A stretch of 64,000 nucleotides of DNA from Lenisia limosa (lineage: Eukaryota > Protista > Breviatea). Below the pieces are notes generated by a model. The model saw only the letters and a list, made by a program, of their open reading frames with translations, ran no database searches and was not told the DNA's origin. The position numbers and the translations under genes are program-made. This document shows, one piece after another, positions 28,273 through 36,700 of the stretch (position 1 is its first letter; each line of letters starts with the position of its first letter). Location of the stretch: contig LPNZ01003549.1 in the NCBI GenBank assembly GCA_001655205.1, positions 6,003 to 70,002 on the forward strand, in the 5' to 3' direction.

Positions 28273-28918
28273 GTTTATTGGGGGGAAGGAGCATCTGTTC
28301 TCAGGGAGGTTCAGGATGTAACGTGTAAAGGTGGTTTTGTGTCACTACTTCTTTCCCTTCTTCTTTCTGTGTTTTTTTTTCTCTGTGGTGACAGTGTGTG
28401 TGTGTGCAGTGTGTGGTGCGATTTATTGTTTTGTTGTTTGATTTGTTGTTTTCGTCCATTTTCGCGTTTCATAGCACACGGTGCGGCTCTGAGGGCCCGT
28501 CACCGCTCCGCTCAAACGACATGATGAATGACATACACACATAAACTTCTACCAACAACAACACATGTACACGTTTAAATAATAAAAATACACAAATACA
28601 GCCCACAACACCATAACAAAGCAAAGTCAAACGCCGCTCTCTCTTCTCTATTTCAAACCTTCCTTATTGGGAAAGCGTCAAACCTTGCTTTTCCATGATA
28701 ACCGCCATGATAAACCCGTAATTATAGATTACTGTCATAATTTCTTTGTTTTGGGTAATTGTAGAGGTCCTCCTAGTTTCCTCTGTTTCCAATCTGTTTC
28801 TGCTTGTATCATTTACTTTGAAATTTGAACTCTCTGCTAGTACTTAATTATTGAATTTCGCCATATTATTCTATTGAACCAATTGGAATTGCTCCCAACC
28901 AAGCGCAACAGGTCAAAG

Positions 28919-31900
28919 ATGTCACAGGTATGCGTGCTAATGCTGACATGTATAGGTTAAGCGGCATGTTGAGTACCGAGTTGAGCCTAATGGTGTTGCT
29001 GTTGCCACGTTGACCAGCCCCACCAATTGCATTGGTTTGCCAGCTACGTGATTTCTCATTTCTACAAAAATTTTATTGACTTGAGCCTCTTGAATCACTC
29101 CTCACTGTATCAAAATATCAAAATAGCGTTTTTGTAAGAAATTCAATGAGTGAAATAGTGATGAATATGTAGGTGAGCAAGTGGTCGATGAAATGTTTGA
29201 GGCTGTTGGGCATGTGATGAGTGATCCAAAGGTAAAGGGCCTTGTCGTAACAGGAGGCGGAAAGTTGTTTTCAACTGGAGCCAATTTGGCCCTCATCCAC
29301 AAGTATCAAGTTGAAGGTTCGCCATTTTGGTTTGACACTCAGACGAACCCATGGCTCCTTTCTTGAAGACTTTGGCAGACATGTTATCACGACTGGAAAG
29401 TGGACCAAAACCCACTGTAGCCTTGGTGACAGGATATTGTCTTGGAGGAGGTCTTGAGCTTGCTCTTTCTTGCAACCATTTGATCATTGGTGGGAAGGCA
29501 ACACTTGGTCTTCCGGAAGTCACCCACGGTTTCCTTCCCGCAGCTGGAGGTTTGCTTTATTTGGCCTTAACTTTCAGGATGTGTCAGACTTCCTCGTGTT
29601 ATTTGTCCCCTTATCGCATCAAAATACATTATGGTATGTCTTTTTGAAACTAATTTCCAGAATGCAACGCTGATTAATGAAAAAAAAGCGGAAATGCTCG
29701 GACTTGCTCACACAGTTGTTCCATCCTTTCAAGAGGCCATGGGTACGCTAGTCTCAAGTTGACTGTTAAGCTGTTGCATCAAATACCGTCATTGCCATGG
29801 CTGAAAATCGACTTGTCCGAAGAATGCCGTGTAGTCATCCTACAATGAATAAAGAAGACTTCCAAAAGGTGAGTCAATGTATATGCGTCTGATTGTCCAG
29901 ATCAAATCAGCAGTTACGGCTCCAAAACGCATCAAACATGCCTCCTCCGTTATGGATGTCATTGAAGTTGGATTGACAAAGGGGTGAGTCCCCCGTGATT
30001 TAATATCCAAGCCCTATTGAAGGATTGCATGCCGAGAGAACCGCGTTTGATGTTTTGTGTCACGATCCCAAGTCAAAAGCAAAGCTGCATGTCTTTATGT
30101 CACAAAAAATGGCTGGAAAGTCTTCCAACTTGCCAGGACCTGCCAAGATTCAATCCGTTGGTGTTATTGGTAAGGCATGCCAAAGTAACATTTGAGGTGG
30201 TGGTCTCATGGGTGCGGGGATTGCTTCAGCCTCTCTTATTAAGGGGTACAAGGTAAGCTTTGCTCTATTACCAATGTCACAATCGCAATTACACTCAGGT
30301 GATGATCAAAGAGATTTCAGCCAAATTTGCCAATGCTGCCGGTTAGTTGGTGCTGACTCCTCAATTTGTAGCTCTTCGTGTTAAAGCCTTCCTATCATCT
30401 GCTGTCAAGGCCAAACGTCTCCCTCAACAAGCCATGTGTTTGTCAAACATTATCTCACCATTCAGTTAAGGTACTTGGCAACCTAAAAGTGACCACGAAT
30501 CTCAATGATCTGAGGCAAATGGACATTGTCATTGAAGCAGCTACTGAGCGACTGGATATTAAACAAAAACTCTTTGTTGATTTAGAAAAAACAGTTGCGT
30601 TATCATGTATTTTGGTCACGAACACAAGCACTCTCACTCTCAATACTGTTGGTGAAAGTTGGCTAAATGACACTTTCAGATTTCAAAGAACATGATGAAA
30701 CCCGATCGTCTCAATGGTTTGCCACATAGTCATTAATCCTCAGGCATGCACTTCTTCAACCCGGTCCTTCTTATGCCTTTGGTGGAAGTTGTTCATCACA
30801 AGAACACTTCACCTTCAGACTTAACATCTATCATTGGTGCGGTTCCATGGTCACTGACAGAATAGGTTTCACAAGAAAACTCGGAAAAACTCCAATTTTG
30901 GCCAAAAGCTGCACCGGATTTGCAGTCAATCGAATGTTTGGTTAGAGGCGGGGGGTTTAGCTCCACATCATTCGAATGAATGACAGTTGTTTTTACCTGG
31001 CATTTAGGTCCGTTTTTTATGGCGGCCATGGCTGCTGTTTATGCAGGTGCCCAGCCTAAAGATGTTGACGGTGTGTAATAACATTTTCATGACAGGTTTT
31101 ATCTTACATTGTAATATTATGATGCTATGATCCAACCTTGGTTGATATACTTGGAATATAAAGTCAGAATTAGTTGTATTAGTTTGAGTCGCGGTAGTTC
31201 TGACTTTTCAGCCGCATTGGAGTCCTTTGGAATGGCAATGGGTCCCTTCAAAACTGCAGACTTGGTCGGAATAGACACCTTTGCTGCTGTACAGAGGTAA
31301 TCAAACCAACACAAGTCATAGACAAATTCATGATGCATACCCTGACCGCTCTATCACCATCCCTTTAGACAAATTCATGACGCGTACCCTGACCGCTCTA
31401 TCACCATCCCTCTGCTTGAAGACCTTGTCAAAGCAAGAAATCTCGGACAAAAAACTGGTATGCTAGGTAATATGATAACATACATGCAGGAAAGGGATTC
31501 TACCAGTATGAAAGAGGAAGTCGCCGTACACATCCGCGCACTGATTTGGATGGCATCTTGGAGGTTTCAAGATTAAAGACGGGGTATGAAATTTCAGCAC
31601 ACCTGACTGTTCAGTCTCGGAATTGAAATGTCCCAAAAGAGCGTTGTACCCAAAGATCCCAAACAGGTGAGATCAGGAAATAGTCTAACTATCCCATTAG
31701 CTTGCTGAGTCTCTGGTATCCTTCCTAGTGTGTGAGTGTTGTCGAGTTATGAGTGAACAAGTTGCAACGGCAGGTGACATCGACTTTGCGGCTGTGGCTG
31801 GAATGGGATTCCCGGCAACCAAGTATGTTCAGTTATAGGCTGACATTCAGGGGCGGACCATTATGGTGGGCTGACCAAATCGGCATTGACAGAGTCATTG

Positions 31901-33636
31901 CCAATGTTGTAGCCTTGGCTCCTCTGTGTCCCAAACTGTTCCAAGTACCCGACTGCATGTTGAAGCATAGTAAACTCAGCATCAAATTGAGGTTTGTAGA
32001 AAACGCATTTGTGACTTTTCAGTCCCCCAATTCTACAAACTGACGAATACGAAGCCTACACCACCCCTCTTTCAGGTGAGATGCCGCAACATCTGATATT
32101 CCCAGGGCCCGCCTTCCAGTCACAAAGAGAAGACGATATTGTCGTTGTGTCATTTGCTCGAACTGCGGTAACAAAAGCGAAGCGCGGAAGTTTCAACAAC
32201 ACACACCCTGCTGAAATGGTTGGAATTCCCCGACATTACCCTCCAGATGTACACCGTAATCAAAAGCACAATGGACCAATGTCCAAACCTGGCTCCCGGG
32301 GGCGTTGGTGACGTCATCTGCGGTACGGACTTGAGATACTGACATTTAGGCCGTGTTCTTGGGCTTGGTGACGTTGAGGCCACATACTGCCGCATGGCTG
32401 CACTTCAAGCCGGGGTGCCATACTCCGTTCCACTTCGCCTCACAAACCGTCTGTGCTCCTCCGGCCTGCAAGCGGTTGCCGACGTGGCCCAGGGCATTCG
32501 GACCGGAATGTACGACGTTGGCCTTGCCGTCGGCTTCGAGTCCATGACAAGACATCATTTGGCTGGAGGTGAGCCCGCTCTTCTGTCATTGGTTCAGATG
32601 GTGATATTGAGAAATGGTCCCGAGCAGAGGGAGACGCGAGTGACTGCTTTATGAATATGGGGATGACAAGTGACAATGTTGCAAGAGACTATCATGTGAC
32701 TCGAAATGAACAAGTAATGAGGGATGAGTGGCTTATGCCTTCTAGGACGAATTTGCTGCTGAGTCCCATAGCAAGGCCAACCAAGCTTCTTCCCTCAGAC
32801 ACAGTAAGTCTTAATAAATCTTATCACTTCAGCCGAAATTACACCATTGCAAACTACAGCATTCATGAAAAAGTCAAGGAAGGGCGAGGCAAAACTGGTA
32901 GAAATCCTCTTATGTGACTTTTCAGGAGACCGTAACGGTGAGCAAAGACGAAGGCGTCCGATCCTCTTCCACCGTCGACAGCTTAGCAAAGCTTCGTCCT
33001 GTGTTTTCCAAGAACGGGACCACCACACCTGGCAATGCGTCTCAGCTCAGCGGTTTGCCAATGTGTCCTGACAGTGTAGATGGAGCAGCAGCCATCCTCC
33101 TTATGACTCGCGCTAAAGCAAGGCAGTTTGGTGTCAAGCCAAGAGCCGTGTTCAGGTCCGCTCATGAAAACACTGATCTTTCAGATCGTTCAGTGTTGCC
33201 GGGGTACCGCCTGCAACAATGGGAATGGGCCCGGCCGCGGCCATCCCTTTGGCCCTCAAGGCTGCTAATGTTGGTGCCGGCCATGACGTCACTATGTAGC
33301 TTGACAAGAGTGACGTCGACATTTGGGAGGTCAATGAAGCTTTTGCAAGTCAGGCCAAATGCTGTCTCGATATGCTTGGTGTTGACCCAAAGAAGTGAGA
33401 CCTTCGAAGCGTTAACGTTTTAGAGCCAATCTAAGAGGAGGAGCGATCGCCCTAGGGCATCCCCTTGGAATGACAGGCGCGCGAATGACGATTACGGCCC
33501 TTGACCAGTTGAGAGTGGCAAAGGCAAAAACGGCGGTGGTATCAATGTGCATTGGAACGGGAATGGGTAGGTGAGGGCTTTGGTTAATGTTGTAGGTGCT
33601 GCTGCTGTGTACGAAAGAGACTCAACCTGCTTATAA
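28919..33636 (+). CDS. Enoyl-CoA hydratase/3-hydroxyacyl-CoA dehydrogenase (MFP/FadB-like) apparently fused in frame to an ACAA1-type 3-ketoacyl-CoA thiolase
   Basis: Hydratase: [20 protein letters not shown]. Dehydrogenase: VGVI|[43 protein letters not shown]. Thiolase: [48 protein letters not shown]. The domain calls are secure; the fusion itself is inferred from splice phases (see findings). Confidence 0.88.
31319..31411. repeat. 47-bp tandem duplication of a splice acceptor plus exon start in the MFP region
   Basis: TAGACAAATTCATGA(T/C)GC(A/G)TACCCTGACCGCTCTATCACCATCCCT occurs twice with a 47-nt period. Confidence 0.92.
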
Positions 33637-33761
33637 GCTCTATTCAACTTCCTTAATTCTTTATTTGTTTTTATTATCTGCAATGCAACCATCACAAGAA
33701 AAATAAAAGAGAATAAATAAAATCAGTAAACAAAGTATATGACTGTCCATAAGCGTTATGA

Positions 33762-36700
33762 TTAGGAAACACTCCTCCTCACACGCGGACCTTTCAAAGT
33801 TGTTTGTGTCTAAAATGTTATTGAGATACCCAAATAATATCGTCACCAACCGGTTTCTTTTCAGCAGGCGTTTTGGTTACTCGTTTCGGTTTCGGACTAG
33901 TGGGGCCTTCTGTCTTCTTTACTCTGCAAAATAATCAAAATAATTTAAAACCAAGGTTACTCCCTGGTTGAAGACAAGACCAAATTGTTGACCGAACCCC
34001 TTACGAAGCCCTTGTGATTCTTGGCCTTGGCATGCTGGAAGTGGTAATAGGCACCTTGTTAGAATCCAACGGTGCAACTGCGGTGCTGGACGCAGACTTT
34101 TGGCCTGGTTTAGGTCTCCGAGCCGCGACAGCCACACGATTACTAGACGGCGATGGCGCCAAAGGAGCTGGAGGCGGCCTGCCGCGCGCAAGAAGAAGCC
34201 CGCTGCTACCACGCATTGCAGCGCGTCTGCTGACCCTTGAAGAGACTGCTGGCGGTGGCGGCGGCTGCGCTTTTGTTTGACTTGCAAGGGCCCGCACTAG
34301 AGGAATCTCCTTCTCCTCCTCCTTTATCTTTGGCTTCGTGACCGAGCTTGAGCGTTTGCGTCGAGGTGTGGCGTGAGGAGTGGATTTTGGTGTAGATTTT
34401 GGCGTGGATTTTGGTGTAGATTTTGGTGTGGTCTTTGCTGGGGTCTTTGCCGAGGTGCTTGACGTTCTCTTGCGGCGCTTCCTTCTTGAAGACGAGGATG
34501 GTGACAGCGGCTCAGACGGCTCCGTAATAATATCGGGGGACACCTCGGGGGACGGAAGGGGGGGATTGAATAGGCTCATCAAGGAGGATGGCACAACGGC
34601 ACGGCTTGCGAAGGGCGGTGTGAACTCCACTTCCTCGGCATCTTGGGGCTGCAGATCGCTTAGATCGAGGGGAGTGGCTGGAATGGACCGCTCAGGCGTG
34701 GGCAGTAAGTCATTATCACTGAACAGTCCAAGTTCATCGCAATCATAACGATCGAAGAGGACAGAGGTGGCAGCCGGGGTAGCAATGGGCTGGAACAACG
34801 CCTCGGGTTGTCGCGGCGGCACGGCGTCTTTTTGTGGAGTAGGTTGCATTGGAGGTTTACGTGGAGTCTGAGGAGAAACGCTCTTTAGACTCCGAGGGGA
34901 AGACACTGGTGTGAGACAGCATAAGCGAGGCGACTGGAGGGGCTGGCGGGGGGATGGTAGGGATTGTCTTGGTGACGATTGCGGCGAGGTCAAGGATTGC
35001 GACCGTGCGAATGGAGCAACAGTGGGACCGGATTTCGGCCCAGGGAAAAGCGTTTTCACCGGCGTTTTGACAGGAGTCTGTGCGATGTAGGGAGGGAGCG
35101 AGCCAGCGGAGGAGAAATGCTCCTTCAAGTCAGGAGAGCTGAGGGGAGACAGCTCGGGCGAAGAAATCAACGTCACTTCCTCGGGTGAGAGGATTGAACT
35201 GAAGTCAACCGCCTTATTGGGTACGGTGGCATAGAGGCTACTCGGTCGAGGCAAGGCCGGCCGCGGACCTGGCGACGCCACGCCATGGTACGACAAACTC
35301 CGGCGGCGGCTGACATTATGTCGTCTTGTTGGCGTGTCGAGGGGCGACGTGGTTGCCAATGGGCTGACAAGGGTTTGGGGGGAGAATGTCGGAAGGTCAG
35401 AAGGCGGCTGGAAGGTACGCGGCGATAGTTGCGGTCGCGGCGAGCTGAGTCTGCGGACTCGTGGGGACGGCTCTTCCTCGGCCTCCTCGGGTACTGCTAA
35501 GTTAGAACCAAGCGGAGCACAATGGAAATAGAGTGGATCCGAGAAATTAAGTGATTATTAATGAAGTGAAGAGAATAACGGATAAATGGACGAAAAAAAT
35601 CCGGATCCAAATATCTTGCCCTCTTAAAATAGCCTCTACAATAGTAATGCAGCTGGTTTATGGTATGCAATGAGGCTTACTTGGAGGGGTGGATTCACGG
35701 AGATTCTCAACCTGCTGGATTCTCTTCGCAGTTGGAGCAATTTTTGGATCAGACAATAAGGCAGCAGTTTGGTAGTTTGCCTGGATGTGCTGAAGGCTCA
35801 TTGATGATGATGTTGATGTTCGTAGTGTTCCTCTGAAGTCACTGGCGGCCTTTTTGCCTGCCCAACCTGTCAAATGATAACCTATATCAGTAAGATAAAG
35901 CAAAAGCAGTAAACTCTTCAAACAATGTCACATGGGTCCAAACTTACGAGACAATGCACCTGGTAGCTCTCCAAGATCGGCAAACTCAAAGTAAAATGCT
36001 GTGCGCCCAGACTACAGAGTCAAAAGAGGACCCATCAATTGGAGTCAAAAGAAGGCCCATCAAGTGACTCGCAGTACCCAACAAAATCTGATTGAAAGCT
36101 CACGTAGTAGGTGTAGAGGTTGGTGAAGATTTCAAGACTATCAGCCTCCTCAGCCACTGCAGCGGAATCGTCGACTGCCTGACCCCACATCTGTGTCGTG
36201 ACAGTATGTTGCGGACTTACAATGTAAGCTGGTCTGTTTGGGATACCAATGACCCCAGCCGCTGCCGTTCCGGATGCTACTCCAAAGGAAACGGACACTT
36301 TCGAAATTTCGTCAACCTAAGCGAAGTGAGACCTTCGTCGTCCCACCTTTGCTGCTGTAATGGTGTCCTTCAGAGTGTCCCGGGCGTCCAAACTGAATGC
36401 ACAAACTAGAGTGTTACAGAAGGGAGAAACAGCAAACGTTGGGCAGCATGGTCATTCTCTGCACCAGGTAAGCCTCCAACAACTCGGTATGTTCCTTCGT
36501 AGGGTGCAAGCTAAAGAGTCACACGCCAACGTCTAAGCAAACCTTATGCAAAGACGGGTACTCCTTGAGGGGATTGTCAAGAGAAGAGTAGATGTGGTTC
36601 AAGAGCAGGGTGATCATTTCAGGATTTAGGACCTAGAATCAGTCAAAACCCCAAAAATGTAATAATACCATTGAAAGTTCAGGGTAGTTCCGAATTGTGC

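Follow-up and report, generated by a model that had tools for sequence, protein, structure and literature searches.

Prediction of a single-chain hydratase, dehydrogenase and thiolase of beta-oxidation in the breviate Lenisia limosa

Do the enoyl-CoA hydratase, 3-hydroxyacyl-CoA dehydrogenase and thiolase coding regions that follow one another on a contig of the breviate Lenisia limosa belong to one gene, or to two genes packed closely together? The region lies within a 64,000-nucleotide (nt) stretch of DNA, hereafter the window (contig LPNZ01003549.1 of GenBank assembly GCA_001655205.1, positions 6,003 to 70,002 of the forward strand; all coordinates below are those of the window). An original prediction, made from the letters of this stretch, had read the three activities as a candidate single-chain trifunctional enzyme assembled across two very short introns. 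Our analysis indicates that one gene very probably encodes hydratase, dehydrogenase and thiolase in a single polypeptide of 1126 amino acids (aa), because the splice-site statistics at the junction, the composition of the spacer that would otherwise separate two genes, and an end-to-end collinearity with many fused homologs all point in this direction (features in Table 1).

Table 1. Features of the predicted gene, its junction region and its flanks.
Feature	Coordinates	Strand	Details	Basis
PTS2-like nonapeptide RHIILLNQL	28859..28885	+	In frame, 20 codons upstream of ATG 28919	
Whole gene	28919..33636	+	36 exons, 35 GT-AG introns, one open reading frame	Homolog-guided spliced alignment and manual curation
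Enoyl-CoA hydratase/isomerase (ECH_1)	28989..29814	+	Residues ~15-207	Limits mapped from C. merolae homolog
3-hydroxyacyl-CoA dehydrogenase part	30154..31991	+	NAD-binding domain and two C-terminal 3HCDH repeats	Pfam and alignment to fused homologs
Junction intron 1	31992..32022	+	31 nt, gtttgtag...acttttcag; 3' end gtgacttttcag	
Linker mini-exon	32023..32075	+	53 nt, stop-free, in frame; GC 49%, exon-like	
TGA	32041..32043	+	Would terminate hydratase-dehydrogenase if intron 1 were unspliced	
Junction intron 2	32076..32105	+	30 nt, gtgagatg...ctgatattcccag; in frame, stop-free	
ATG in thiolase frame	32081..32083	+	Inside junction intron 2; translation would start here if there were two genes	
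Thiolase part	32106..33636	+	Thiolase_N ~32138-33114, Thiolase_C ~33136-33618; ends DSTCL	
3' flank of gene	33637..33720	+	GC 22-28%; two AATAAA, at 33702 and 33712	

The gene was modelled with a purpose-written protein-guided spliced aligner, using eight fused homologs as guides, and the model was then curated by hand. The resulting open reading frame (ORF) of 1126 codons runs uninterrupted across the 36 exons from the ATG at 28919 to the stop at 33634-33636, and the predicted protein ends in YERDSTCL. Thirty of the introns measure 26-34 nt and the remaining five 39-141 nt; the original prediction had called the two junction introns (31 and 30 nt) typical of the local size. All 35 are of the GT-AG type, with a branch motif resembling CTRAY that precedes the AG by 6-10 nt. 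When non-AG introns were permitted, all that the aligner gained were short, spurious introns where conservation is poor, and these were rejected. Elsewhere in the gene, a 44-nt tandem duplication (31321-31364 and 31365-31408) lies across the acceptor site of a 72-nt intron (31297-31368), such that the final 44 nt of this intron duplicate the initial 44 nt of the following exon; the contigs of the DNA run break exactly at this point and the word depth rises from 38 to 56-66, hence the copy number or assembly may be uncertain here.

At the junction, the final exon of the dehydrogenase half ends in AAATTGAG and is followed directly by gtttgt (31991/31992). The splice sites, joined peptide, stop at 32043, ATG at 32081, 37-nt gap and DSTCL end that had been reported for this locus all match the sequence. 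Because intron 2 is both in frame and free of stops, the fusion depends on the removal of intron 1 only: keeping intron 2 would just add 10 residues, and the fusion holds either way. To score splice sites we combined position weight matrices (for the 5' site, and for the last 16 nt plus two exon bases) with a length term, trained on the gene's remaining 29 short introns (leave-one-out for true introns) and compared with 479 GT-AG decoys from the antisense strand. Intron 1 reaches 17.2 bits, higher than 24 of the 29 true introns (mean 14.2), with the best decoy at 15.9, and it shares its last 12 nt (gtgacttttcag) with an intron supported by homology, that at 32898-32925. Intron 2, at 11.4 bits, falls around the 99th percentile of the decoys and in the lower range of the true introns.

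Some bridge between the two halves is not rare by chance, as 26% of dinucleotide-preserving shuffles of positions 31966-32105 (n = 5000) gave an in-frame, stop-free GT-AG connection, and the open 53-nt stretch is by itself weakly informative (chance ~0.4). The quality of the bridge is another matter: shuffled junctions reached at least 10 bits in 30 of the 5000 cases and at least 15 bits in none. When guided by the homolog from Heterolobosea sp. BB2 (GEZU01026542, P0204), the spliced aligner selects precisely the introns 31992-32022 and 32076-32105. Overall, the junction arrangement exceeds chance expectation.

The stretch that would separate two genes (stop to ATG, 32044-32080) has a GC content of 54% over its 37 nt, vs. 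49% for the exons, and contains no AATAAA poly(A) signal. Beyond the actual end of the gene, two such signals occur within 80 nt of the stop. With its exon-like GC, its lack of a poly(A) signal and its dissimilarity to the AT-rich true 3' flank, the spacer does not look intergenic. Upstream of it, the thiolase frame (frame 3) is already open from 32015, 22 codons before the ATG at 32081.

Each of the three enzymes is recognizable in the exon pieces. Pfam detects ECH_1 on exon 29351-29560 (E = 1.3e-13), 3HCDH_N (1.2e-14 and 2.4e-9) and 3HCDH (3e-5 and 0.0039) on four dehydrogenase pieces, and Thiolase_N (5.5e-17 and 1.5e-14) and Thiolase_C (3.5e-18) on the thiolase pieces. Both hydratase glutamates are present, namely Glu116 (29456-29458, in GGGLE) and Glu136 (29516-29518, in LPE); the dehydrogenase motifs are intact (the GGGLMG dinucleotide-binding loop at residues 306-311, His436 and Glu448); and the thiolase keeps all of its catalytic residues (Cys821 at 32454-32456, Asn1046, His1078 and Cys1108). 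The earlier statement that the catalytic motifs of all three activities are present is therefore borne out residue by residue, with every known catalytic position checked and intact.

Homologs with the same organization are numerous. Searching 1.84 billion representatives with the 73-residue thiolase exon (phmmer) retrieved a 1145-aa protein (P0061) with its thiolase at 781-848 and Pfam domains in the order ECH_1, 3HCDH_N, 3HCDH, Thiolase_N, Thiolase_C. This protein is encoded on JGI metagenome contigs by an uninterrupted ORF of 3438 nt, for which no splicing assumption is needed, and its cluster contains the Cyanidioschyzon merolae protein XP_005538607.1/BAM82571.1, named by the depositors (for XP_005538607.1) [quoted passage not shown]. 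Database searches and cluster look-ups together yielded ~80 clusters of 1030-1220-aa proteins sharing these five Pfam domains. Red algae are represented by Galdieria, Porphyridium, Pyropia, Chondrus, Gracilaria, Hildenbrandia, Agarophyton, Timspurckia and Compsopogon, and other lineages by the glaucophyte Cyanophora paradoxa, the jakobid Andalucia godoyi, Heterolobosea sp. BB2, Balamuthia mandrillaris and environmental assemblies; the fused sequences of BB2 (GEZU01026542), Gracilaria and Porphyridium (MMETSP) derive from transcripts. With BLASTP, the Lenisia model aligns to more than 40 fused proteins as a single high-scoring segment pair running from residue ~8 to ~1120, at 36-40% identity, and a region search with the BB2 protein found none of the ~80 fused clusters to exceed 41% identity to the model. 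The linker of ~30 residues lies within the range of the family (13-32). No large cluster with the fused architecture was found in the ESM Atlas.

The architecture itself is already known. A single-chain enzyme of this kind was described from C. merolae (CMR380C) and Porphyridium and was taken as a likely red-algal feature (Mori et al., 2016; PMC4928187). While the gene structure proposed for the Lenisia locus is well, though indirectly, supported by splice scores, spacer and homologs alike, the novelty that the original prediction implied does not hold, the architecture being both in print in that study and annotated in XP_005538607.1. Its companion statement, that separate chains normally carry these activities, holds as a general rule but leaves out part of the picture, given the single-chain form of C. 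merolae and Porphyridium (PMC4928187) and the ~80 clusters found here. The predicted Lenisia protein is instead a member of this existing single-chain "MFP-KAT" family (MFP, multifunctional protein). It shares with the red-algal proteins (~1100-1160 residues) the order ECH-3HCDH_N-3HCDH-linker-Thiolase_N-Thiolase_C and is collinear with them over residues 8-1121 (36-38% identity), but it is far more divergent than the red-algal members, and its gene is broken up by 35 tiny introns where P0061, a cluster mate of the C. merolae protein at ≥90% identity, is one uninterrupted ORF. The closest full-length relative is the BB2 protein (40% identity), whose linker of 30 residues is nearly as long as that of the Lenisia model; Andalucia ANDGO_06968 (P0266), Balamuthia KAL6070666.1 (P0182) and Cyanophora tig00000692_g3274 (P0206) share the architecture as well.

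Which type of beta-oxidation enzyme was joined in this way can be read from the nearest unfused relatives and solved structures. Unfused peroxisomal proteins (plant-type MFP, KAT thiolases) match the respective half of the Lenisia protein about as well as the fused proteins do. For the MFP half, the nearest solved structure is Arabidopsis MFP2 (2WTB), with HADHA and FadB more distant; for the thiolase half, the nearest are the peroxisomal enzymes 2WUA (sunflower), 2C7Y/2WU9 (KAT2), 1AFW (yeast POT1) and 2IIK (human ACAA1), with HADHB and FadA farther away. The structure search returned no solved chain spanning both halves. The separate peroxisomal enzymes (plant MFP2/AIM1, 2WTB; rat MFE1, 3ZW8; KAT/ACAA1) have the same catalytic residues, carried by two chains rather than one. 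The trifunctional enzyme (TFE) complexes HADHA/HADHB (5ZQZ, 6DV2), FadB/FadA (1WDK), FadJ/FadI and Mycobacterium tuberculosis TFE (4B3H) carry out the same three steps with a homologous alpha chain, and keeping these steps together probably follows the same logic in them; however, they are non-covalent alpha2-beta2 or alpha4-beta4 assemblies, whereas the Lenisia enzyme is one predicted chain with a thiolase of the ACAA1/KAT type and not of the HADHB type. An identity as mitochondrial trifunctional protein alpha/beta or as FadBA was ruled out, as the nearest relatives, solved and unsolved, are of the peroxisomal type. By its sequence, the Lenisia enzyme is a predicted covalent version of the peroxisomal MFP and KAT pair rather than of the trifunctional complexes of mitochondria or bacteria.

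We built a quick maximum-likelihood tree for the thiolase, which places the Lenisia domain with moderate support within 18 fused sequences (Shimodaira-Hasegawa-like approximate likelihood-ratio test, SH-aLRT, 89) on a branch of 1.06, and a tree for the MFP half, where the branch reaches 3.19 and the divergence of the sequence prevents its placement. These trees are not taken to show whether the fusion arose once. In the MFP tree, the C. merolae fusion has as its closest relative a Cyanidiococcus yangmingshanensis protein annotated with 752 aa and no thiolase domains (P0183); the gene was probably split in annotation, and a real fission is the less likely explanation.

Several alternatives to a single-chain product have to be weighed. 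Two tightly packed genes, with the hydratase-dehydrogenase stopping at 32041-32043 and the thiolase starting at the ATG at 32081, could have arisen when an ancestrally fused gene split secondarily, or could be expressed from a bicistronic transcript. Such an arrangement draws on the existence of this stop and in-frame ATG, on the lack of any RNA read showing the splice, and on the unfused 752-aa Cyanidiococcus record beside the C. merolae fusion, although the latter may be a gene-model split. We consider it quite unlikely, as the 37-nt spacer is exon-like, lacks AATAAA and is too short to hold both a 3' end and a promoter; as the true 3' flank, AT-rich and with two signals, looks nothing like it; and as a near-perfect intron restores the frame at this very place (17.2 bits, with none of the 5000 shuffles reaching 15 bits). 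The thiolase frame being open for 22 codons ahead of the ATG, and all close homologs with this domain order being single chains, also argue against two genes. Regulated retention of intron 1 would reconcile both organizations in one locus, with the spliced form giving the trifunctional chain, the retained form a stand-alone hydratase-dehydrogenase ending at 32043, and both being made. In protists, splicing of very short introns is often incomplete, and with intron 1 retained, translation would meet a clean stop 17 codons into the region formed by intron and mini-exon; yet intron 1 is among the top-scoring introns of the gene, which argues for efficient splicing, and the thiolase would go untranslated in the retained form, leaving this option very unlikely.

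The product could also be a decaying or functionally reduced fused copy under relaxed constraint, with at least one of the three activities lost. Such a copy might display what is seen here: of the 226 near-invariant positions of the family, 32 are changed, including several in the hydratase and dehydrogenase (e.g., TQ to CV at 148-149, VGN to AKS at 477-479), the MFP half has a very long branch (3.19), and RNA coverage is very low (share 0.04). A decaying copy would nonetheless have to have kept 1126 codons open over 35 introns, all with GT-AG ends and branch-like motifs, along with every known catalytic residue of the three enzymes, and we regard this as extremely improbable. With all catalytic residues and the 35-intron structure intact, we consider the predicted product functional, though divergent.

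The single-chain gene is not free of difficulties of its own, and the following observations count against it. Only two public runs go with this sequence, one of DNA and the other a poly(A) "metatranscriptomic" run from the same 2016 study; no contig of this sole RNA run maps to 28850-33750, and its share of the sampled words at 31851-32218 is 0.00. Apart from an 86-aa genomic ORF call (P0002), the searched protein collections yielded no near-identical protein. The stop at 32043 and the in-frame ATG at 32081 make a two-gene organization literally possible. The 32 changes at the 226 near-invariant family positions compare with 3-17 in other members, and the terminal branches of 1.06 (thiolase) and 3.19 (MFP half) with a median of 0.21, the placement being poorly resolved, above all for the MFP half. 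Finally, the dimerization, channelling and localization of the product are matters that we infer only.

In its targeting signals, the Lenisia protein differs from the majority of its family. The original prediction had noted no evident peroxisomal targeting signal of type 1 (PTS1) or type 2 (PTS2) and no mitochondrial presequence, and we agree on each point: the C-terminus reads TCL and is no PTS1, no PTS2 match follows the ATG at 28919, and the hydratase domain begins at residue ~8, leaving no room for a presequence. Among the fused homologs, 56 of 69 carry a canonical PTS1 (AKM, AKL, SRL, GKL, ARL, SKM and others), including most red-algal members (SRL, AKL, AKM). BB2, Andalucia, P0269 and Balamuthia have PTS2-like nonapeptides in their place (RQTVLLGHV, RREVLLSHL, RREVLLGHL and RRELVLSHL, respectively), which sit in an N-terminal extension, whereas the Lenisia model begins at the hydratase domain. 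PTS2 normally sits in front of the thiolase in separate thiolases; the PTS2-like nonapeptide of the fused family precedes the hydratase, i.e., it stands at the N-terminus of the whole fusion. Neither signal is found in the nearest relatives of the Lenisia protein in the thiolase tree, nor in the C. merolae protein, which ends in RAAL and was not peroxisomal by green fluorescent protein tagging (PMC4928187).

The 5' leader of the Lenisia gene does contain a nonapeptide (RHIILLNQL, Table 1) that fits the R-x-x-[VI]-L-L-x-[HQ]-L pattern of the fused homologs without PTS1. The leader frame is open from 28841 and contains no in-frame ATG. A longer N-terminus including this nonapeptide was rejected, as neither a single intron nor a pair of introns of at least 6 bits connects it to an upstream ATG. 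RHIILLNQL, a post hoc observation, could be the relic of a lost PTS2, part of an unrecognized N-terminus or non-AUG start, or a product of chance. The protein carries no PTS1 and no PTS2 after its annotated start, and it probably works outside the peroxisome.

How such an enzyme would operate can be outlined from the model. Removal of the 35 short introns from the mRNA would yield one chain of 1126 residues, which would catalyse steps 2-4 of beta-oxidation, that is the hydration, NAD-dependent oxidation and thiolysis of acyl-CoA. Thiolases are obligate dimers, and a homodimer formed via the thiolase domains is therefore the most likely assembly; it would mimic the alpha2-beta2 layout of FadBA/TFE, with the tether maintaining a 1:1 stoichiometry and proximity. 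In the AlphaFold model of the BB2 homolog (mean predicted local distance difference test, pLDDT, 89.8; predicted template modelling score, pTM, 0.75), both halves are confident and disorder is confined to the N-terminal extension (1-39) and the linker (750-766, below 50), which fits two folded modules on a flexible tether.

Judging from gene and transcript sequences, the predicted fusion shows a spread across several supergroups, with jakobid, heterolobosean, Balamuthia and glaucophyte members in addition to the breviate. What is added to the known architecture is an intron-rich, signal-less breviate member and this spread beyond red algae. We found no paper on the wider distribution of the fusion, although our literature search was limited and this absence is not proof; nor did we find literature on a trifunctional enzyme in Pygsuia, and a preprint on breviate mitochondrion-related organelles makes no mention of the enzyme. 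One could imagine the fusion not as a peculiarity of red algae but as an old eukaryotic invention (Archaeplastida, Discoba, Amoebozoa, Obazoa), originally peroxisomal, of which the breviate copy has lost its targeting, with RHIILLNQL left in the 5' leader as a remnant of a PTS2, and acts outside peroxisomes today, but we hold this full scenario to be rather doubtful. Under it, the breviate enzyme might run reductively, in the chain-building direction, or reside in a mitochondrion-related organelle. The value of the locus is mostly annotational and evolutionary, as it adds a breviate to the lineages known to have the fusion and offers the case of a typically peroxisomal enzyme without a recognizable targeting signal in an anaerobe. 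More generally, a natural single chain for steps 2-4 of beta-oxidation is useful for studies of substrate channelling and for pathway engineering.

Downstream of the gene, a single-exon ORF of 452 aa lies in convergent orientation (34001-35359, - strand), its end 365 nt from the thiolase stop; its predicted product is rich in Ser, Pro and Thr, with TPKS repeats, and of low complexity.

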